A DNA stretch of 63,811 bases, filler included, from Octopus bimaculoides (taxonomy: Eukaryota): NCBI RefSeq assembly GCF_001194135.2. It is 6 parts of 6 records of this genome, joined end to end, with 100 filler letters (N's around TTAATTAATTAA, not from the genome) between each part and the next. Parts side by side here need not be neighbours in the genome. Positions count along the whole stretch, not along the records: positions 42,550 to 55,805 come from NC_069000.1; 5 more parts are not named here. One strand, 5' to 3'. The translations under genes and the position numbers were made by a program. The notes below the pieces were generated by a model. It had not been told where the DNA came from, did not search any database, and was given only the letters and a program-made list of their open reading frames with translations. Positions 11,851 through 57,600 of this stretch are shown piece by piece; position 1 is the stretch's first letter; every line of letters begins with the position of its first letter.

Positions 11851-13454
11851 TAAAATAGTGCTTGAGTCTGTTTACTTTAAAATGTATATTAGCTAGTTAA
11901 TAAATAGTGTTCGATAATATGTTCGAAATTAAAAGCAGATACTGCGTTTGTTTCAATGTGGCAAACTTGCCTAGCGGTTGTGCTCTAATTAAACAATGCA
12001 TGGCAAAATTATAAATACCTAAACCATGGTTTATGAAGTACAAATACTTATACACTTGATCATTTCGCTGAATATACACATAAGGAACTGGAAGAAAAAG
12101 TAGGTCGTGTATGTTCATAATTGCTGTCTCATGAAGTTCATTACTTTTAACGCAGTACAGATTAACTTCATAATCATGATGTGTTACATTTTAGCGGTAC
12201 ATTTATACTCCTTAAGTCAGGCATTCACTGGCGGTTTGAGGACTGAGTTTGTTTAAATATACAGTTCCTCTCAAATAAATCAAAGAGAATAAAAGAAAAA
12301 AAAACCCATTGATGAGTAGAAAAAAAAAAACACACACATACACACACACACTTATACAAACACACACTTATACAAACACACTCACACATAAATGTATTTA
12401 ACATATACATCTAAAACTCCTCTTTGTGAAAACCAGAATTAATGGTTACATATCAAGTTTTGACTTGGACATTGATTTCTTGTTACTGATTTCTGGGATA
12501 GTTGAGATTATTAGAGCTTGGTATTCTTATAATATATTTTTGTGTAACAAACGATTTGAGTATAGCATTTTATTAAAAAAAGATGAAATTGAAGTGGAAT
12601 TACCTAACGAACGAAATGTTCCCATCAGCTGTTTGGAAAAATTACCGAAAATATATTGCCAATAGACGAGTGCATGATATAAACACAAGCGTGTTAATAG
12701 AAAAATCCTGATGATTATTTCAGAATTAGGAATATCTTAGATAAGCCTATATTGTATATTCCTGCTCAAATTATTTATATTTGGACGTCCCGAATAATCC
12801 ATTTTGTGGGATCGTATTCCATTATACTATCCCTTCGTTTTCACACAAAATAAGATACATATGTGAAATTAGCTTTGTTTGCAGACAGATTTCTATTGCC
12901 CTATAGTTTTATCCCATGCTGAACCTGTTGTCTCAATGACCAACTAAATTACATTCACATCCATCAGCATTTGTATTACTTCCCTATATATCATCCACTT
13001 TGAAAGGCAGGATCATTTAGTTGGGTATTTCTGAATGATTCTTAAATTGTAGACAAGAATTTGGTGTAGGGAATAACAGTGTTTACTTAAGCTGTGAGAT
13101 CTAAGAAACGATGCTATTAAGAAAAGTACGGATAGTCACAAAGCTGCCGTTGTTAAAATGTTTGTGGTATTTGTTTGGCAAGGAGATGTTTATATTGCAA
13201 GGAATAGCAAATTGCTAGCTATGTTGGAGATTACGTTCTGAATGTAGATCTAGGTCTAACAAATTGTGTTTCTCTTCATCTCATTGGTATTTTGCGTGGG
13301 TGGCGATGATTCTGAGACGCACGTTTCTCACCGAAGTCACATCTTAGTGGCAATTCTTATGAAAGAAGGGAAAATGAAAGCATCCACCAGATGACAAGTT
13401 GTGAATTCCCATGTATGTATGTGTGTATGTCACATACACACAGCCATTCAGGGA

Positions 13455-42449: not shown

Positions 42450-42637
42450 NNNNNNNNNNNNNNNNNNNNNNNNNNNNNNNNNNNNNNNNNNNNTTAATTA
42501 ATTAANNNNNNNNNNNNNNNNNNNNNNNNNNNNNNNNNNNNNNNNNNNNCAAATCAAGAAAAAAAAAGTTTGGAATATAAAAATTGATTTTTATTTTACT
42601 GGAAATATTGAAAAAGTACTGATGTATTACTTATGAA

Positions 42638-42985
42638 CAGGCTGTGTGGCAAGAAGCTTGCTTCCCAACCGCATGACTCCGGGTTCAGTCACAGTTTAGG
42701 TGTCTTCCACTATCTATGGCTTTGGGCCGACGAAAGCCTTGAGTGGATTTGGTAGACGGAAACTGAAATAAGCCCGTCGTGTATATATGTATGTGTGTCC
42801 CTGCCATTGCTTGGCAACCGATGCTGGTGTATGTCCCAGCAACATAGCGGTTCGGCAAAAAGACCGTTAGAATAAGTACTAGGCTTACAAAGAACAAGTC
42901 CTGGGGTAGAGTTCTTCGAGTAAAGATCCCTTAAGGCGGTGCTCCAGCATGGCCACAGTCAAATGACTGAAACAAATGAAAGAAC
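42638..42985 (+). mobile_element. tRNA-derived SINE family A, near full length
   Basis: A-box-like tgtgtggcaag and B-box-like ggttcagtcac. Body gagtggatttggtagacggaaactgaaa; tail ggcggtgctccagcatggcc.cagtcaaatgactgaaaca. Many copies in the window. Confidence 0.8.
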
Positions 42986-44420: not shown

Positions 44421-44673
44421 AAGTAAATTTTTAGGGACAAAATTATCAAGTCTGCTAGTTCAGGCTTCTACTTTCTTCGTCGTCGTTGCTATTGTCTCCA
44501 TTTTCATTACACTGCGTTCCCCAACTCCCACCCTTTCGATTGTTACTAATCAGGGGCGAATCTCCTTTCAAAAACAAACAAAAAATCTGTAAAATGTTCT
44601 TGCACTCGTGTGTCCCTTATGTGGTTTGTATATTTAAAAAATATTTGCCTTTAAAAAAACGTAGCACATTGAA

Positions 44674-44856
44674 TTATTCTTTTACTTGTTTCAATCATTT
44701 GACTGCGGCCATGCTGGGGCACCGCCTTTAGTTGAATAAATCGACTCCAAGACTTATTCTTTGTAAGCCTAGTACTTCTATCGGTCTGTTTTGCCGAACC
44801 ACCAAGTTACATAAACACCAACATCAGTTGTCAAGCGATGGTTGGGGTGGGGGACA

Positions 44857-44904
<48 letters not shown>

Positions 44905-45065
44905 ACAGGCTTCTTTCAGTTTCCGTCTACCAAATCCACTCACAAGGCTTCGGTTGGTCCGAGGCTTATAGTAGAAGACACTTGCCAAGGTGCCACGCAG
45001 TAGGACTGAACCTGGAACTATGTGGTTGGGAAGCAATATTCTAACCACACAGCCACGCCTGCTCC
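44674..45065 (-). mobile_element. SINE family A, full length with internal (TA)n
   Basis: Reverse complement of the 42638 copy; includes the gcaccttggcaagtgtcttc CORE-like motif. Confidence 0.85.
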
Positions 45066-45410
45066 TATTAACCTTGATTTCAACCATAACCGTTCAGTCC
45101 TTTATATTTTTCGGGAATTTACTTTTTATTGCTGTTTATCCATCAGTGGTAACATTGCTGGATTTCTGAAGACTTCTTCCTCTTCTGTTAACCACTTCCG
45201 CTTCCATAAACGATAGTCCCCAGGGTAAGAAGTGATGTGGGTTCAACACCAACCAATCTGTTTTTACCACTGAAACCTACTCCTCTCCCCCACCCCACGG
45301 AAAGATCAGTCACTTCATTAAATCTAACGTCGTTTCTAGCGAGATCCGATCTACTTTGAGGAATTCAAGATTTTACAAATAAACAGGAAAAATGTGTATG
45401 TACATTAAAT

Positions 45411-45416
45411 TTTATT
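45411..45416 (-). terminator. Candidate polyadenylation signal (AATAAA) of the tandem-repeat gene
   Basis: AATAAA on the minus strand about 210 nt past the stop codon, followed by a U/GU-rich tract. Confidence 0.45.
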
Positions 45417-45626
45417 TTATAATTAAAATCTAAAATATATGAAAACGAAAAAAATTCTAAAATGATCATAATTGGTTAATATTCATCTTGAAAAACATTA
45501 AAAATGACAGTTCATTTTCTATCTCTTTTGCTGTCAGTTAAATAGGTTTGAAGGTAAAAATAACAATTGATTATCAGAAGGTAATTGTGTGTATGAGAAA
45601 ATAATGAATATCAACAGAAGTTGGTA

Positions 45627-46512
45627 TTAATATAAAGCAATTTCAGTTGCTGACGTTTTAGCTATTTCTTTGGCGTGATTGACAACATCGGGTAAGTTTG
45701 GCGATGTCGATTCCCTTGGCTGCACTTGGACGTTGTTTGACGTTCTGGAAGTCATTATTGTCGAAGTGACTGTCGTTGGAGTGGTTATACACGTCGATGG
45801 AAGAGCAGCCGGAGGCAAAGAGGACAAATGGCCGGCATCGAACGTTGCTGTTATAAACGCTTCGTATTCAACGGTCCCCATTTTAAAATGCAGACGATCG
45901 TGTGCTAACTTCATAATACGCCCCTGAAGAGTGCCATCACTCAAGGTATCAATAATGGATTCTGGGATTATCGCATAGACCACAGCAGTTATATAGTCGA
46001 TTGTCCATTGGCATAAATTTGCATAATCGATTAACTCGAGAATCAGGCCATTGGTGAAGTTTTCCACGCCAATGCGGTGAAGATTTTGCTCATTAAGACT
46101 TTGTTTGCACAGCCTACTTGAGAATGTGAAAATACCGGCATAGCGAAATATTATGGAAGTAGGCGGCGGTTGAATCTTCTCATAATCAAATGTGGAGTCT
46201 GTTTTGTCAAAGAATTCGTTCAAAAGCCGTAAATATTCCGGAGTTCCCACTGAAAGTTGAGACCTCTTTAATACCACGTCTAAAATACGATATTGAATGT
46301 TGGCTGGTTTTATACAGACTTGAACTGAATCGGGTGCCAACTGACGGATTACTCCAACCAAATGCTCAAATGTCCATTTATTGATGTTAGAATAATCATA
46401 AAGTTCCAATACCAGACCATTTACGTACCAATGGGCTTCAATTCGTCGTAAATCTCCAGACTCTAGTTTTGCATTGCTGATGTCAGCCGACAGACAATAT
46501 AATCCAGGATAT
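45627..46512 (-). CDS. Terminal coding exon of an unrecognised protein with two tandem 103-aa repeats and a Thr/Ser/Pro-rich tail
   Basis: 886-bp open frame in otherwise stop-rich DNA. It extends the tracked ORF (45627-46409) back to an acceptor ttctttcgttgtttctAG (46513-46514). In-frame stop about 30 nt further upstream and no ATG, so splicing is required. Internal repeat is 32/103 identical without gaps; ends in TAA. Confidence 0.8.
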
Positions 46513-47934
46513 CTAGAAACAACGAAAGAATAAAGATAGTATTAATTGATAGAAGTTAAAACATAATTATTTTATCTTTTACAAATTTTACTTATTTCTC
46601 ACAGCAACTGAACATTGTCTTTCGTCACAGGTTTCCAATCGACTGTTTCAATGGATTTCCAACGATGAAAGTAACAAGGGCGATGCCGTAAATAATGTAG
46701 AACAAATATAACAAAGGAGTCTGTTCGCAAAGCCCAGGTCTTTCGAGGGCATTAATGAAAGCTACACGCAGAACGTTCTACTGTTTCCACCAACCAAATT
46801 TCACTCATAAAACATCGTCGATCGACCCGCAAGGAGTCACTTTTCCCCAAGATGCCGTAGAGTGCGATCAAATCGGAACTACAGTAGGTGCGAAGCTAAC
46901 TATTTAACAACAAAACTATCAAAATTCATCTCTTCCTACCACCACCACCACCCTGCTACCACTTCATTTTTTTCTCAGCGGACACTATTGATCGATCTAT
47001 TGCCTTATTGAAATACACTAATCGAAAATGGCAGATTGAGCTTGCCTGCTGCATATAATCCAGAAACCTGAAATACAAGAAGTTGGAATATATATATAAA
47101 AAAAAAAAAACTGATTCAACCGCAAAACTATATTTTCATTTATTTGATAGAAACGGAAATACTCCAATGAAACATATTCACTGGCGTTGGTAAAAACACT
47201 TCTAACACGAACCAGTGAGGAAGTATCTTGGTAGGTTTTAGTCTTCTGTAATAAATTCTATTTACATCTAGTCTGTATTACAGGATTATTAATTCGACTC
47301 GAGTACTTCTTGTCTAGTAATTTATTTTCCGTCCTCTGAAGAAGGAAAACCAAAGTTACCTCGGCAGGATTCGAACTCAGAACGTAAAAAGTTGTAACTG
47401 AAAAAAAACTTATTATTGTAGATATTTTGTCCTAAGTTCTAACGATTCAGTCAATCGCTTGATCTATTAAAAATACCAGTTAAATCTGTTCCTAGCATCT
47501 TATTAAAAGATACAAACATACTCGTAAACTATTTTGATCATAATAAATTGAATAAAGTACGAGAGGATCACGCACAAGATATTCTATCAAGGGCCCCTGC
47601 CCCTGGGTTGTTAGGGCCTTTTTTTAAAATTTTCACAAAGGTTAAAATCTACAAATAATGTGCTTATTACATTTTCTTATCCTTTTTATTTTGAAAACCC
47701 TAAGCACAGAACAATGACACCCCTCTACAACGAGAACGTGATGTCCTTGGTGACTGCTCGAGTTGTTGGTACCTTCTTCTGGTACCTTCATCGATAACGA
47801 TTGTATAGATTCCTCTTTAATCTTCGTTACGAACGAAGAATAACTATTGCATTAGAATAATCTATGTTAACGATCTTCCGACGTAGAAGGTTACCTGGGT
47901 TATTCTAATCAAATATAATAGAATGAAGCATAAG

Positions 47935-48023
<89 letters not shown>

Positions 48024-48672
48024 AAACAAAAGAGAAAGAAAGAGAAAAATGTAGAAAAGATTTATATTTTAATCCTTTTGTTTCCATTGTATCTCGCAGA
48101 AATGAATTCCTAGCTAGAGGCGATAGCTGTGAGCTATTCGATGTTAAGCTATAAAATTATCTTCTTAACAGTAGTCAGCCATCTTTAAAACTTATATAAG
48201 TTTCAAATGAATTGAATAACTTGAATAGAAATTGAGGCGTTCCTCCACCCACTGCTTATAGCCACAATCGTTTTTCTTTCAAAATTAACATTTAGTCTGT
48301 CTTTCTTGATATTTCACGTAAGTCTTTACATTAATTTCGAGAAACAGAAGCTTCAATATCAGTAACATTGTTGTCACAAAGAAAAGTTGCATCTATACGT
48401 GTACCAAACAGGCCAAAAAGAAGAAAAAACCCTTCGCATTCGGAGTGAGCATAAAATCATTTAAGATTCCTGCACTGTTGTTGTCAAACCAATGTACAAA
48501 TTGAGACAAATCGGGGCCCTTTTTCCATCTAAAGCTTGATGAAACATTCTCCTGTGCTATCCAGACCATCATCATCATCATCTACCTCATCTGATGAAGG
48601 AAAATCAGAAAAAAAAACTTTGCTGTATAAATCTTCCATTTGCAACTGGGTTTCTCCTGTCGATGTGTGTTT

Positions 48673-48846
48673 TAGGGCGGTGAGCTGGCAGCATTGTCAG
48701 CACGACGGACAAAATGCCCTGTGACATTTCATCCAGCTTTATTATGTTCTGGTCTAAAATTCCGCCGAGGTTGACTGTCTTTTATCTTTTCGGGGTCGAT
48801 AAAATAAGTACCAGCTGCACACCGGAGTCGATGTAATCGATTGCCA
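48673..48846 (+). mobile_element. SINE family B
   Basis: ggcggtgagctggcag...aattccgccgaggttgac...ttcggggtcgataaaataagtaccag. Confidence 0.75.
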
Positions 48847-49419
48847 GGAGCACCACTCAGAGCCATGCAATGTTCACCTGTCTCATCGCCATCACTATTT
48901 CTGCTTGTTGAACCCTACACAGTGCTTTCTTAAAAAGCATAGACACACGAGTCTTCACAACTCAAGCAGTCTAATGCTAATCTATATATGATGCTATCGT
49001 TAATGTAAGGGCTCCGGTGCATTGCTTTGCTGGTAATGGTGTGGGGACCATATTGTAAAGAGGCTCCTGACGCTGTATTAACTCTTGTTACTGCTAATGA
49101 GTAGATCGCGTATATCATCATCATTTTAACGTCCACTTTTCCAAGCTTTCATGGGTCGGACGGAATCGATCGAGGCAGATTTTCTCGGACCGGACGCCCT
49201 TTTTGTCGTATATATTTCAATTTACAAGATAAACTTTTGAAAATATTTAGTCAGATATCTGTAAATTTATTTATTGTTACATGCGATGCCGGGATAGACG
49301 AATTATAATCTCGTACTTATGATTCGATTTTGATAATGTTTTAAAATTTAAGTAAGAACACATTAGAACGGTTGTCTTAGAAGGGTTAGTATTAAAAAAA
49401 TCTATCGCTTCTTCAAATC

Positions 49420-49730
49420 CTTTCCAGACATTCACTCTTTTCAACAGGCAGACGTTCCAGTTTAACCAACTACAATGGCCTCTGCAGTACGAGTGCTTGT
49501 CTACAAAGGATACGAGCCCTGACTTTCTACTTCAGACTAATAAAAAGAAAACGTCATTGAAGTAGATGCTTTATCTCATGTTTTATCATTGAGAAACTAT
49601 ACAAACCTAGTTATATTTGCCGACGAAGATAATGCCATCGAGAAATACATAAATCAGGATTACATTCAGAGAGAGACGAAGCCAGAACAGCATCGACAGA
49701 TGGGCGTCAATTGCTGATGTCTATATTTAG
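49420..49730 (+). mobile_element. Highly degenerate mariner transposase fragment
   Basis: QQADVPV..., YEP*LSTSD (compare YSPDLAPSD) and IFADEDNAIE..., with several stops. Confidence 0.35.
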
Positions 49731-51474
49731 ATCATACATTATTAACGCTCACGCTCCATTCTAATTTGCTGGTGTCGCAATGACTGCTGAAGCTTAAATT
49801 ATTATTTTGGAAAGGAATTTCAAACATAACAACCTCAAGGATTTATTTTTTAAATATGCTAATTATTCACGCCCACTCCTGGTGCAATTTCGTACATATC
49901 CTTATTGATTTTCTCTGCATTACTTCGGCAAATAAAATTAAGCGTATGCTTAACTAAGGCTTAAAGGCCTCCAATTGTCAACCTCGCCGAAATGATTAAC
50001 TATAAACTCTTTTTATCCCCAACTCGTGTTTATTTATTAGATTTTTGATGATCATAAAATACTAACTCAACTATTGTTGGTTTTTTTTTTCTTCTTCTTC
50101 TTATATATATAGAGGCGGTTTTCATGAGTAATTGAACAGAACACAAAAGATTCGAGAAATTTCGTTTTATTTTCCTTTTGCAAAAAGGCTGCAGTACTAT
50201 ATATAGTTAGAACAATTTCCAACGAAAACCTAATCTGTGTAGAAATAGCTGCCAAACGTCCGTCAACACATCACACTCTAGTATCTTAAAAACAAAGAGA
50301 AATACATTGAATAATGCATGTCTAGCTGTACAAAAAGACGAGACATTGTATTCATAGCCTGAAAGCTTTTATTACTGGCCTGTTCAATCAAGACTGATTT
50401 GGAGGGGTTACACAAGAGCTGAAATAAGAAGTTCTTCATATTTTCAAGAATTCATATCGCCAAAAAATGTCCCCATTTACCGTCTTACCCACTTCACCAG
50501 ACTTTCGGAAACATCGCTATCATCAATCCTATTAGGGGACGGAATGATTTCAACCAATGCCAATAGCTTGTATTTTGTCGCTGAACCAAAGAAACTCAAC
50601 AGCAACATGTGCGATGAGGGAGACTTAGCTGCACCAGGACTCGGTTGAAATGATGCATCGCGCCGCCTCGCCCGTAAGTTGAACTTGCGCCGTGACTAGC
50701 CAAACAGCCTAACCACTAAGCGACGCGCGCTCGTGCATTGATTGCTAATGTAAAAAATCAAAATTATAAAAAGGAACAAGATTGACATGCTATCCATCAA
50801 AGGTCATCAAATCTTTTCACATTGCAAAGGGTTTTAATAGCTGCTGCCCCCCCCCCACCTTTGACGCTACCTGCCCACAAATTGAAACAAACAACTTCAC
50901 TGCCCTATCACTTCCTGGTCATCAACATCCTTTCACGCGAGCTCTCTCTCTCTCTTTCTGATCNNNNNNNNNNNNNNNNNNNNNNNNNNNNNNNNNNNNN
51001 NNNNNNNNNNNNNNNNNNNNNNNNNNNNNNNNNNNNNNNNNNNNNNNNNNNNNNNNNNNNNNNNNNNNNNNNNNNNNNNNNNNNNNNNNNNNNNNNNNNN
51101 NNNNNNNNNNNNNNNNNNNNNNNNNNNNNNNNNNNNNNNNNNNNNNNNNNNNNNNNNNNNNNNNNNNNNNNNNNNNNNNNNNNNNNNNNNNNNNNNNNNN
51201 NNNNNNNNNNNNNNNNNNNNNNNNNNNNNNNNNNNNNNNNNNNNNNNNNNNNNNNNNNNNNNNNNNNNNNNNNNNNNNAGATAAGCGCTAAATTCAAAAT
51301 ATTGTTTCAAACAATAAGTTCGACAAGTAAACAACATGAATTGAAGGGTGGACCTCTATGTGGTCACTCGACCTGCAAGAAAGTGGTAGCAGAAAATCTT
51401 CCTCCAAATTAAACTGAATAAATAAAAATTGAAAATAAAAGCACCAATCTAAAAAGACAAAATACGTGGCAAGT

Positions 51475-51697
51475 CCCTCTTCTTACTACAACCTCGGATC
51501 GACCAATGAATTTGGTTGAGGAAACTGTGTGGAAACCTGTCGTATGTGTATGTATGTGGCTATGAGGGTCCTGTCGAGTAAAGAGACCGCTAGAATAAGT
51601 ACCAGGCTTTAAAAAAAGAACTGGGATCGATTCATTCGACAAAAACAAAATCCAAGATGGTGCCCCAGTATGGCCGCAGTCTAATGGCTGAAAGAAT
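51475..51697 (+). mobile_element. SINE family A, partial, tail-to-tail with the 51703 copy
   Basis: agaataagtaccaggct...gatggtgccccagtatggccgcagtctaatggctgaaa tail. Confidence 0.65.
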
Positions 51698-51702
51698 ATA
51701 TT

Positions 51703-51914
51703 CATTTATTTGTTTCAGCCATTTGACTGCGGCTATGCTGGAGCACTGCCTTTACGCGAGCAAATCGACCCCAGGATTTATACTTTGTCAGCCCAGTACT
51801 TATTCTATCGGTCTGTTTTGCCGAACCGCTAAGTTACGGGAACGTAAACACACCAGCATCGGTTGTCAAGTGATGGTAGGGAGCAAAACACAGACATGCA
51901 AATACATATATACA

Positions 51915-51951
<37 letters not shown>

Positions 51952-52073
51952 GACGAACTTTCAGTTACCGCCTTGGTCGGTCCTAGGCTATAGAAGACAC
52001 CCGCTCAAGGTGCCATGCAGTGGGACTGAACCTGGAACCATGTGGTTGGGAAGCAGGCTTCTTACCACTCCTG

Positions 52074-52075
<2 letters not shown>
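51703..52075 (-). mobile_element. SINE family A, full length with internal (TA)n
   Basis: Closely similar to the 44674-45065 copy. Confidence 0.85.

Positions 52076-52152
<77 letters not shown>
52076..52152. repeat. (TA)n microsatellite; many other (TA)n/(CA)n arrays flank the N gaps
   Basis: Direct reading. Confidence 0.95.
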
Positions 52153-52157
<5 letters not shown>

Positions 52158-52265
52158 ACACACACAACCAGGTCCGTCCGTCCGTCTCCACCGTTTGATC
52201 AGTTGTTCAGGAAAGGTGACAGAATACGTAGCAAGTCTTCAAACTCCTAAGCACTTCGACTAAAC

Positions 52266-52434
52266 CAGTGGTTCTCAACCGGAGTCCACATGGCCCTTGG
52301 GCGGGGGTCCATACAAGATTGTTATCAAAGTTGCTTATATTTCTACAATACGGAAAAAAATAAAGGGATTTTTTAAGCATCGAATGGCTGCGAGGGTCCA
52401 GTCGAATAAAACAGAAAATGGTTGAGAACTGCTG
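52266..52434. mobile_element. hAT-type MITE, same TIR family, shorter
   Basis: TIRs CAGTGGTTCTCAACC and GGTTGAGAACTGCTG. Flanks GACTAAAC / GACTTAAAC. Confidence 0.7.
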
Positions 52435-52734
52435 GACTTAAACCTTTCAAGACGGTGCCCCAGCATGACCGTAGTCCAATGACTGAAACAAGCATGTTGA
52501 ACAGTCTACATAGATTCAGATAAACTGTCTGCAATGCCTTTGATAATATCGATCAGAGCTAATCTAGAAGCTAAGGATTATTTTATGAGAATTAAATCAA
52601 TTCAAATTAAACAAAAGGTAGATTAAATTAGAGAATTATCGATAAAAGGTCGTTGATAAATCTATTTCAGGAATATATTCTAGAAATATATTTTAAGATT
52701 TTTCCTTTTTAGATTTACACAATCGAAGTTTTAT

Positions 52735-53046
52735 GACAGCCGCAGCCATGTGGTTAGGATGTTTGCTGTCAAAGTACAGCATCTCGGATTTCGTTCCGCA
52801 GCACGGCACCTCCCTCGTGAGTGAATTTGGCAGATGGAAACTGTCTGGAAGCCTTTTCTATGTATGTGCCTTGGTGTTTGTATTTGTCTTCCCACCACTC
52901 GACAACTAGTGTTGGTTTGCTTACGTCCCCATAACTTAGCTGTCCGACAAAAGAGGATGATAAAATGGTTTCGGTTTGTTTGATTAAAACCCTTCAATCT
53001 TGTACCCCAGCATGGCCGCAGCCCAGAGACTGAAAGAAGATAAAAT
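52735..53046 (+). mobile_element. SINE family A, diverged
   Basis: gtgagtgaatttggcagatggaaactg...ccccagcatggccgcagccc. Confidence 0.6.
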
Positions 53047-54944
53047 ATCATTCCAACCGTGCCCATCATCTCGTGTTTCAAGAGGATATCTACATCCAGG
53101 ACTACGTTGGCTAATGTGGTCTTTCATAGTTGATGGGATTCGAGAGATATTTGGCTGCTGTTTATAACAGGTTAGACCAGTCGTGTAGAGCAGTGTTTAT
53201 TTACCTGTTGTCTATGTCCCACTCCTGTTAGTAACGGATTTCACCTCGATCCACTCACGATATTACATTGGTCATGGAAATCGATCTTCCTATAAAATCG
53301 AAGAAACTGTGTCTCCATTGGTTTTTCAAAATTGTTGCTATTCGCTCTCGGTTGTCCCTGATAAAATTTCACTAAAATAAAATTTTTTTCAAAGAGTAAT
53401 GATGACAGAAAATCACACGTGAGTGAGTGGGGTGGACCAAGCAGTAATCACAGCAAAATAAAGTACCTGTCAAGTACTGGTACTTTATTTGTCATATATA
53501 ATTGACTATCCCTCTTTAAAAATTTAAAATATTTTTAATGATGAATTAGCTTAGCTGTTCCAAACAATTAACTCCATTCTAGGCCCAGTCACATATTCTC
53601 CATTGACAGAATTGCACATTTGCTTTCGGTTCTAATCATTGCTGAAAACATTTGTTTACGATAACCAGGGGATGGGATCCGCAAAAGGTTTCCTGTAAAC
53701 TTTATTTTTAAGCCCACGAGTCTTTTGTTGGTTGTGAATATTTCAAACTTGCCGTATATTTACAAACTTCGCGCTCCCTACAATTTCTCTTGCGTACGTC
53801 TGCGCGTGTCGCGGTCTAAGAATCTCCCGATCTTATCGCTTCAAATAATAAGGAAACATTGGAAAACATAGTCCTCAACATCCCCTCCTCCCTACGAAAA
53901 GAAAACCCCGAGAGACCAGGCCTACCTTCGGGTTTAATCAACTAAAACAAGAGTTTTGCATGAAAGACAAGTCTCAGATTAAGAAAAAAAACCTTCATGC
54001 TATATTATCACAAACAGACATATTTTTGAGAAAAAGATTTTGGGCCATTTACCCCGTTATTTGTGTAAGACCTGAAAACTAATACATCCATTCGTAATTT
54101 AAAAAAATGTTTCTACTCTAATTTGAAATATAGTCTTTTGTACAAATCTCTTGTGGTTTCATTAAAAGAGCAGCTTGTAATATATTCCTCATATCCTCAA
54201 TAAAACAACTTCAAACAACTCATAGATACCAAATGAAAAGAAATTATAGCACCAGAATAACAGAAGATTCCCATTAATGGAGTTTTAGGATTCGTTAATT
54301 AAACACGAGAGCAGGGAGACCTTTTTTTATCATTTCAATCGTTTCCAAAGTTTTGTGAGCTGTCAGAATTGTGGGGAAAATACCACAAGGTATTTTCCCC
54401 AGCTCTCTCACTGAGTTTAAATCCCACCGAAGTCATCCCTCCGAAGTCGATAGAATAAAGTACAACTCAAGAACTAGTGCTGGTAATATCGACTAATCTA
54501 CACTCTTCAGAAATTAGAACAACTGGAACAATCGGGATTGCTCCGATTGAATTACTGGTATTTACCTTATCAACTTTAGAGTTTGACTCTGCTAGGATGT
54601 GAAGTTTGGAGTCGTATTGTGTAAAGAGACCAAATAAAATACAGTTAATTAATGAAAGGTGATTAATAAAAAAAAAAAAGGCTCAAATAAACTCCAAAAA
54701 TATAGTGAACGAAGTATTTTATCACCTGACTGACATTTTCTCATAACTTGCCAATTCCCCAGCAATTAAGAATTTGCCACAAATGACAAACAACAATAAA
54801 CTTATTCCTTTTGTGAGTTTAACGAAACAACATTGCTACAGAATTGATAACTGTAAAACACTTTGACTTAAAAACGATTGGAACTTGAAGAAGAAACAAA
54901 TGCAGCTAACTTAAAGCATCAATCGAGGAATATGTAGAGCTTAC

Positions 54945-54961
54945 CTCGTATGAAGTGCCAT
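54945..54961 (-). CDS. Candidate first coding exon ATG GCA CTT CAT ACG AG (MALHT-R), phase 2
   Basis: Strong Kozak context (atcATGG), consensus donor AG|GTAAGC, A-rich UTR-like upstream sequence and a CpG-rich neighbourhood. Phase fits the 46512 acceptor. Confidence 0.5.
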
Positions 54962-55514: not shown

Positions 55515-55550
<36 letters not shown>

Positions 55551-57600
55551 ACACACGCACAGGTGAAATGGTCTGGAACGTCGAATCTGTCACCTTTTTT
55601 TTTGTTTCCGTCATTAGACTATGGCCATGCTGCGGCACCTCCTTTGAGAATCTTTTCTTAAATGAATAAACCCAAGTACTTATTTTTTTGAAGTCACGTA
55701 ATTATTCTAATTTTTTTTCGATTTTGCCGAACCGCAAGGTTACGGGGGACTGACACACACACACACACACACATAAATACGACGGGCTTCTTTTAGTTTC
55801 CGTCTNNNNNNNNNNNNNNNNNNNNNNNNNNNNNNNNNNNNNNNNNNNNTTAATTAATTAANNNNNNNNNNNNNNNNNNNNNNNNNNNNNNNNNNNNNNN
55901 NNNNNTATATTTATATGCATGCTTATATAAGTATATATATATATCATATAAATCTATACATACATATAAATTTGACATGGGCGATTCTTTCTTGTCTTGG
56001 AATTCACGGTCAAACGGCTGGGTGGAATTGCGCGAAACATTACATGTGTAGAATGATCCGGTGGTGATGCTGGGCTTTGTATTATTTTCATAGCTCCCAT
56101 GGTTACAGAGATAATCTACTATAATAATACTCATGTGTTTATGAATGAGAAAGGAAGGGGTGATAGATGAATAAGGAAGGAAGAGGTGAGCGTTTCAACT
56201 CTATGTGAATATATGTGTATGTAAATGGGGGTATGTGAATATGTGTGTGTGCGTGTGTTTATGTGTGAGTGTGCGTGTGCGCATGCAATGTAAGTGGGAT
56301 GGTTCATCTTTGTTCGCTTTGTATTTGGGTTTATTTTTTGATTTGCTTGAATCTTGGTTGGTTTGTTTTGTTTTTTTTTTTTGTTGGTCAGTTATTTTTA
56401 GCGTTTTGACAGAAAAAAAAGGCATTCTAAAATTGTTTTTTAACGTACGCGTGCCCAAACAAGTCGAATGCTTACACAGAGCAGGTTTTACATCCAAATC
56501 ATCCAAACCGACAGGGTGAAACCGGGCTTAGCTGCTAGTATATATATATATATATATATNNNNNNNNNNNNNNNNNNNNNNNNNNNNNNNNNNNNNNNNN
56601 NNNNNNNNNNNNNNNNNNNNNNNNNNNNNNNNNNNNNNNNNNNNNNNNNNNNNNNNNNNNNNNNNNNNNNNNNNNNNNNNNNNNNNNNNNNNNNNNNNNN
56701 NNNNNNNNNNNNNNNNNNNNNNNNNNNNNNNNNNNNNNNNNNNNNNNNNNNNNNNNNNNNNNNNNNNNNTATATATATATATATATATATATCAACATAC
56801 GTATATGTAACAGCTTTACGGATAGTACCGCCTTGTAGACACACTCAACACAATGAAGAAAATCTAATAATAGTGGCCTTGTAAAATTCAAATTGCACAT
56901 ATGAAGTAGACATAACACAAACACTAATTTACACACACTTTGGAAACAAGCAAACACATATTTTTATGAAATAATTGAAATAATTTATGTAAACGTTCCG
57001 GTTGTAAGTTGAAGACTAAATTTACATGTAGTTAAAATTAAGGAACGAAATTGCATTTTCTATCTAATTAGTTTCATAATTATACATCGCCCTGCTTATA
57101 ACATTCGCATATACAGGTAGTTTTACTGATTTTTGTCGATCAATGGCGATATATTTACAACGTTATTATTCTGTTTAAATCTTTATATTCAGTAGTTTGT
57201 CTCCTATAACCGCCAGAACGAAGAACGAAAACAGAAATTCCAAGACATTTGGAAAATTAGCATCCAGGTGATTTTGAGAACATTGAAAAAGAATATGAGA
57301 GAACGCAAGTGACAGACAGACAAAGCAGAATGAACTTTTATTTTTCCTTTGTTTCACTTATTCGACTGTGACTATGCAGGGGTACCTCTTTAAAGGGTTT
57401 AGGCAAACAAATCTACTCCACTTATTTTTAAGTCTGGTACTTATACTATCGCTTTTCTTTTTCCAAACCGGTTACATGAACATGTTAACACCGTTTGCCA
57501 AGCGTTGATGACGGTCAAACAAAAACACACTCATACAGATATACACACGTATACACACACACACACACACACACACATATAACACACACACACACACACA

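Follow-up and report, generated by a model that had tools for sequence, protein, structure and literature searches.

The minus-strand reading frame at positions 45,627–46,512 of the window (the whole stretch of Octopus bimaculoides DNA that was analysed, 63,811 nucleotides with filler) is the principal coding exon of a real two-exon gene, most of whose product consists of two old, diverged tandem copies of a ~100-residue unit that is predicted to be helical. The gene model is already public in RefSeq as LOC128250357; it is the domain family, with its tandem arrangement, that is undescribed. Our overall reading, to which we assign a probability of roughly 0.55, is that this is an octopod two-exon gene with an ancient duplicated, undescribed domain, and that its product would act as a soluble intracellular adaptor. 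Lineage-restricted genes are plentiful in cephalopod genomes, and few have been studied beyond their database label. LOC128250357 makes a good study case: it is single-copy and strongly constrained, its exon structure is fixed in two octopod families, and its duplicated domain is unmatched by any sequence family, solved structure or viral predicted structure. The newness concerns the distance of the domain family from known families rather than a demonstrated new mechanism, and its present importance is modest.

Gene structure and orthologues

The piece of the window that carries the gene matches O. bimaculoides chromosome CM046620.1 with 100% identity at ~1.40–1.42 Mb, with assembly gaps bounding it on both sides, and the database protein XP_052831169.1 ("uncharacterized protein LOC128250357") is identical to the spliced 300-aa product. 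On the minus strand, an open frame extends from 46514 to a TAA at 45629–45627 (295 sense codons plus the stop), and it is preceded by a polypyrimidine tract and AG (…ctttcgttgtttctAG|A TAT CCT…), the acceptor being ...ttgtttctAG at 46514–46513. Exon 2 opens at position 46512 with the third base of codon 6, so the interval 45627–46512, which the preliminary description had presented as the protein-coding unit, is an exon and not the whole gene. That description had placed the start of the exon exactly, but missed both the 17-nt first coding exon and the RefSeq entry.

The coding part of exon 1 (54945–54961, minus strand) reads ATG GCA CTT CAT ACG AG, that is, MALHT plus two nucleotides of codon 6, and is directly followed by the donor GTAAGC at 54944–54939. 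We knew the MALHT start from a 98%-identical 300-aa O. sinensis protein found by protein search, which guided the pattern search for exon 1; the ATGGCNYTNCAYAC pattern has a single match in the window, at 54961–54948 (minus strand), where chance alone would give 0. The start codon at 54961 thus lies 8.4 kb upstream of exon 2. The phase-2 intron (46513–54944, minus strand; 8432 nt) has canonical GT..AG splice sites, and splicing 54945 to 46512 makes codon 6 AG|A (Arg). The coding part of exon 2 (45630–46512, minus strand) supplies the third base of that codon and codons 7–300, followed by the TAA stop codon (45627–45629); this terminal coding exon is 886 nt long and carries 98% of the coding sequence.

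Two clusters were all that phmmer returned from 1.84 billion representative proteins, one of Octopus proteins and the other a single Argonauta protein, and the same two came back from a word-indexed search and from a profile search with the four full-length proteins (5.8e9 clusters). The Octopus cluster comprises the O. bimaculoides protein, O. sinensis XP_036366982.1 and O. vulgaris CAI9738004.1, at 97–98% identity; Argonauta hians GAB1603203.1 is 257 aa long and 51–55% identical. All four orthologues share the intron position. In O. sinensis, a 17-nt coding exon is followed by GTAAG in the same phase as in O. bimaculoides, and the first coding exon of the Argonauta gene is also 17 nt (ATG TTT GTT TAT CAG TG|GTAAGT), with a second exon in the same phase preceded by a T-rich tract and AG. 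Each annotated proteome searched holds one copy, and there are no paralogues among the 1.84e9 representatives. As far as the available protein sets go, the gene is found only in octopods (Octopus plus Argonauta), a restriction judged on protein sets, with the genomic DNA of squid, cuttlefish, Vampyroteuthis and Nautilus outside its scope.

The distance from ATG to stop is 9.3 kb here, shorter than in O. sinensis (14.9 kb) or O. vulgaris (14.6 kb). The intron contains a run of N's at 50964–51278 (an assembly gap), one full (51694–52068) and one weaker, partial (~51580–51696) copy of a SINE-like repeat, and microsatellites. Given this gap, and the kilobase-scale N runs that flank the piece (at 42550 and 55805), the O. 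bimaculoides intron length and the immediate neighbours of the gene are uncertain. The preliminary description had put the gene upstream of, and possibly nested in, a laminin beta gene. This placement is not supported: the annotations of O. bimaculoides, O. sinensis and O. vulgaris show no gene but this one at the locus or within 10 kb on either side, and the laminin that had been seen lies on a different, unrelated piece of the window.

The SINE-like repeat is dispersed, ~380 nt long, and has a (TA)n microsatellite in each copy. In addition to the full intronic copy, which is on the plus strand, copies occur at 44671–45048 (plus strand), at 42640–42984 (inverted) and, in part, at 55590–55805. 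The copies within the piece are 68–79% identical, and each 35-kb orthologous Octopus locus has at least 10 of them. No tRNA or Rfam match was found for this repeat, nor any Rfam family in the piece as a whole. Long (GA)n, (GA/CT)n and (TG)n microsatellites in the intron and 5′ flank (47933–48031, ~55520–55550 and ~55750–55775) produce artefactual ORFs with many SL or IY repeats.

The internal duplication and its age

The central claim of the preliminary description, that the protein contains two homologous units of ~103 residues aligning without gaps at 32/103 identities with a period of 123 aa, is reproduced in full. The units at 46512–46206 and 46145–45837 (residues 1–103 and 124–226 of the open frame) give a Smith-Waterman BLOSUM62 score of 168 (z ~32), whereas 3000 shuffled versions of one unit scored 25.0±4.5 (maximum 54). 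All of the shared motifs that had been listed (RY.G, L....L.RI, NGL.LEL.DY.N...WT, P.S, Q.RI, GT.EY and FD) are present. Numbered along the spliced protein, copy 1 (46206–46512, minus strand), delimited by the internal alignment and the AlphaFold single-domain model, spans residues 6–108, and copy 2 (45837–46145, minus strand) spans residues 129–231. Between them lies a linker of residues 109–128 (46146–46205, minus strand) that includes the sequence IQPPPTS (I119, Q120, P121, P122, P123, T124 and S125), which is invariant in the alignment of the Octopus and Argonauta proteins.

At the DNA level, the two units are identical at 143 of 309 positions, which makes the duplication an old one: this is a repeat at the level of protein and not a recent duplication of DNA. 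The Argonauta orthologue helps to date it. Unit 1 of Octopus matches unit 1 of Argonauta at 51/103 positions and unit 2 matches unit 2 at 60/103, whereas every cross-comparison of a unit 1 with a unit 2, in either animal or between them, yields 26–32/103. Since the orthologous units resemble one another more than the paralogous ones do, the duplication is older than the split between Octopus and Argonauta (Octopodidae/Argonautidae), in agreement with the age that had been suggested for it, and both copies have been retained since. PMC9635652 states no divergence time for this split.

Across the four diverged units, 18 positions are invariant: Y2, G4, S9, L17, L22, N32, G33, L34, L36, E37, D40, W47, P61, R76, R84, E93, Y94 and F102. 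The conserved acidic (E37, D40, E93) and basic (R76, R84) residues are on helices 1 and 4 of the model described below, and the other invariant residues would be mainly hydrophobic or aromatic ones of the core. Acid/base pairs on these two helices would be consistent with salt bridges between the helices or with a conserved surface for interaction. No conserved Cys/His pattern or catalytic-looking set of residues appears among the invariant columns.

Predicted fold and comparison with known families

AlphaFold did poorly on the full-length protein, for which the alignment held 3 sequences (pLDDT 45, pTM 0.31), and made it all-helical except for a short hairpin in the linker. The single-domain model, built on an alignment of the four diverged repeat units and hence on only four sequences, was better, with a mean pLDDT of 76.8, a pTM of 0.71 and core blocks at 86–92. 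It has helices at domain positions 32–44, 49–59, 62–65, 70–86 and 92–99; the N-terminal 30 residues are less certain, and two of the five single-domain models were weaker (pLDDT 59–62). From the better models, we infer that each copy folds as a compact bundle of about five helices, and the all-alpha pattern that had been read from the sequence is borne out by the predicted structures.

No family had been recognised before, and our searches gave no meaningful match either. For the full-length O. bimaculoides and Argonauta proteins, Pfam-A returned no family at E ≤ 10; when the domains were isolated, one repeat drew two chance-level matches (E of 0.08 and 0.14, 13 bits against cut-offs of 27–31). 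Searches of PDB sequences with single sequences and with a four-repeat profile gave best E values of 0.58–0.96, which are chance-like. Foldseek comparisons of the domain model found nothing better than E = 2 in the PDB (TM ≤ 0.36) or than E = 2.5 in BFVD. By every test run (Pfam, PDB sequence, and Foldseek against PDB and BFVD), the domain lies outside known families; the fold search covered PDB and BFVD, with AlphaFold DB, ESM Atlas and HHpred outside it, so a remote known fold is possible. RFC lid domains recurred among the weak Foldseek matches and were rejected as non-significant. An HTH-like nucleic-acid-binding domain is not supported either, as both domains are net negative and neither PDB nor BFVD yielded a matching fold.

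One way to account for these results is that the unit belongs to an old, known family of helical domains (death-fold, SAM-like or a helical-repeat adaptor) that has diverged beyond recognition, its orphan status being an artefact of fast evolution. The protein does evolve fairly fast: Octopus and Argonauta differ at close to half of their residues, as given above (51–55% identity), with dN ~0.35 and saturated synonymous sites (pS 0.87). Small helical bundles are, moreover, a very common architecture, and divergence past recognition is often cited as a way in which orphan genes come about (general background, also treated in PMC12904771 and PMC8059200). The full-length model also produced generic helical-repeat matches (eIF2B-epsilon, TPR, HEAT/W2, 14-3-3, PUF), but these have E ≥ 0.12 and TM ≤ 0.21 and come from the model with a pLDDT of 45, and a repeat unit of 103 residues with a period of 123 is far from the 34–45 residues expected of TPR, HEAT/W2, 14-3-3 or PUF members. 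The single-domain profile matches nothing among PDB sequences, and the full-protein profile returns the orthologues alone. Foldseek usually recovers common helical folds even when sequence similarity is gone, yet TM values stay at or below 0.36 in spite of a model core with pLDDT 86–92. We therefore consider a diverged known fold unlikely, while taking it seriously; if it were correct, the protein would be an ordinary fast-evolving adaptor.

A second possibility is that a mobile-element gene was domesticated, either as the transposon-derived nucleic-acid-binding module that the preliminary description had floated (here, one derived from a transposase) or as a two-lobed helical protein resembling Gag/capsid, of the Arc/PNMA type. 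A layout in which a tiny 5′ coding exon precedes a single exon with nearly all of the coding sequence is common among retrogenes and domesticated element genes, although an almost intronless coding sequence, while compatible with a retrogene or element origin, is equally so with birth de novo. Retroviral and LTR-element CA domains, Arc, PNMA and SCAN are likewise all-alpha bundles of ~100–130 residues arranged as two consecutive lobes, and several retroviral capsid N-terminal domains (HTLV-1, MLV, BLV) do appear in the weak Foldseek list. Their E values of 3–10, TM of 0.33–0.36, probabilities of 0.07–0.15 and rmsd of 8–11 Å are far from significant, and BFVD gave a similar picture; we regard these matches as noise. 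In known capsids, the two lobes do not repeat each other's sequence, whereas those of LOC128250357 do (31% identity). Nor does the locus have the surroundings of an element: as had been observed, there are no TIRs around exon 2, and we found no LTRs, target-site duplications or other direct repeats there. Pfam gave no Gag, capsid, SCAN, transposase or integrase match at E ≤ 10; the 1.84e9 representatives, annotated Octopus proteomes included, hold no further copies, and IMG/VR has no encoded relatives. The domains are also acidic, with net charges of −1 and −4 for domains 1 and 2 in Octopus and −1 and −7 in Argonauta, which is atypical of nucleic-acid binders. Domestication of an element, in either form, thus seems quite improbable.

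A further reading is that the ~100-residue unit is a genuinely new domain, possibly with a new helical fold, which would have arisen in the octopod stem (de novo or from an unrecognisable source), undergone an early tandem duplication, and then been strongly constrained, within a single-copy gene, from a time before Octopodidae and Argonautidae diverged. We rate this full scenario as a little short of an even bet. Were the domain truly new, it would offer a small, expressible structure target (~12 kDa per unit) and a model for how domains arise, duplicate and become indispensable.

Constraint and possible function

In a comparison of 294 aligned codons with O. sinensis, 35 synonymous and 7 non-synonymous differences were counted (dS 0.196, dN 0.010, omega 0.053), a synonymous excess with Fisher p = 2.5e-17; taken separately, the two domains give an omega of 0.032 and the tail one of 0.108. 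Exon 2 shares 95.2% identity with its O. sinensis counterpart and 95.1% with that of O. vulgaris. The last 800 nt of the intron, by comparison, are 88–89% identical to the same two species and have 37–42 gap positions. Because purifying selection, which had been proposed earlier, goes together here with an intact frame and with a splice structure conserved in orthologues, these comparisons identify the frame as functional coding sequence under strong purifying selection, and not as a pseudogene or a chance ORF. Although no contig for the exact protein was found in RNA assemblies and no mention of the locus or of the protein identifiers in the literature, a non-functional reading (chance ORF, pseudogene or annotation artefact) is effectively refuted by the substitution pattern, with a dN/dS of 0.05 and not one indel over 883 nt beside an intron that accumulates them, and is also at odds with an intact frame and identical splice structure in 4 species from two octopod families, whose separately deposited gene models (2 RefSeq records plus the O. 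vulgaris and Argonauta submissions) agree.

The 250 nt after the stop codon (45377–45626, minus strand), a probable 3′ UTR, agree with O. sinensis and O. vulgaris at ~95% of positions, a level that matches the coding sequence and exceeds the intron. Such conservation points to constraint on the 3′ UTR, which may hold regulatory elements or perhaps a structure related to RNA editing. A canonical AATAAA at 45416–45411, 211 nt past the stop codon, would serve as the poly(A) signal.

Beyond domain 2, the Octopus protein ends in a tail of residues 232–300 (45630–45836, minus strand) that fits what had been described: a Ser/Thr/Pro-rich segment (49% S/T/P over 41 residues), predicted to be disordered, and then a short predicted terminal helix (~45633–45695). 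In the full-length AlphaFold model, the former has pLDDT <50 and the helix falls at ORF residues 274–294. The tail is kept in all three Octopus species. Neither tblastn nor the protein alignment turned up an Argonauta counterpart, and since the tail is absent from the Argonauta model, it cannot be essential to the ancestral function. The Argonauta protein instead stops 28 residues past domain 2, in a basic tail (net +6; 12913–12982 of the Argonauta locus excerpt). Both proteins have a hydrophobic-x-aromatic C-terminus (-ALY and -LQF).

We found no signal peptide or transmembrane segment in the protein, as had been stated before: the highest Kyte-Doolittle mean over 19 residues is 1.3, and this maximum falls in a buried helix of domain 2. 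With no Cys/His metal site, no catalytic-looking constellation and acidic domains, non-enzymatic action is most likely. We tentatively propose, with about one chance in three of being right, that the protein is a non-enzymatic, intracellular, protein-binding adaptor, a reading drawn from absences (of an enzyme motif, a basic surface, a signal peptide and a transmembrane segment). Its two related helical bundles would be held together by the rigid, conserved IQPPPTS linker, and in this predicted arrangement they would form an intramolecular pseudo-dimer whose two protein-binding surfaces are alike without being identical; the S/T/P-rich tail, specific to Octopus, could be a modifiable or regulatory extension. 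Such a protein may work like death-fold, SAM and FF-type adaptors and helical-repeat proteins, which share its size, all-helical content, tandem layout, soluble intracellular character and freedom from catalytic or metal-binding motifs. This is an analogy of action only: neither sequence nor fold searches gave a significant match to death-fold, SAM, FF, TPR, HEAT-W2 or 14-3-3 proteins, and we do not claim membership.

Among cephalopod proteins, the reflectins (taxonomically restricted cephalopod families; PMC9068888) offer a comparison. As far as protein databases show, LOC128250357 resembles them in being confined to a cephalopod sub-lineage and in lacking homologues elsewhere, and it is likewise built from internal repeats. 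In contrast to them, LOC128250357 is single-copy rather than organised in tandem gene clusters, is an ordinary globular helical protein by prediction rather than one of Met/Tyr-rich low complexity, and has no demonstrated link to morphological novelty. As to its origin, the gene may be a fast-diverging older gene or may have been born in the octopod stem lineage. If lineage-specific birth of a domain followed by its internal duplication is the true history, LOC128250357 would be a clean and tractable cephalopod example. The upstream neighbour of the Argonauta orthologue encodes a protein with zf-CCHH (PBZ) and HPF1 domains (1–2575 of the BAAFZT010000030.1 excerpt), and this gene is a possible synteny anchor for squids and Nautilus.
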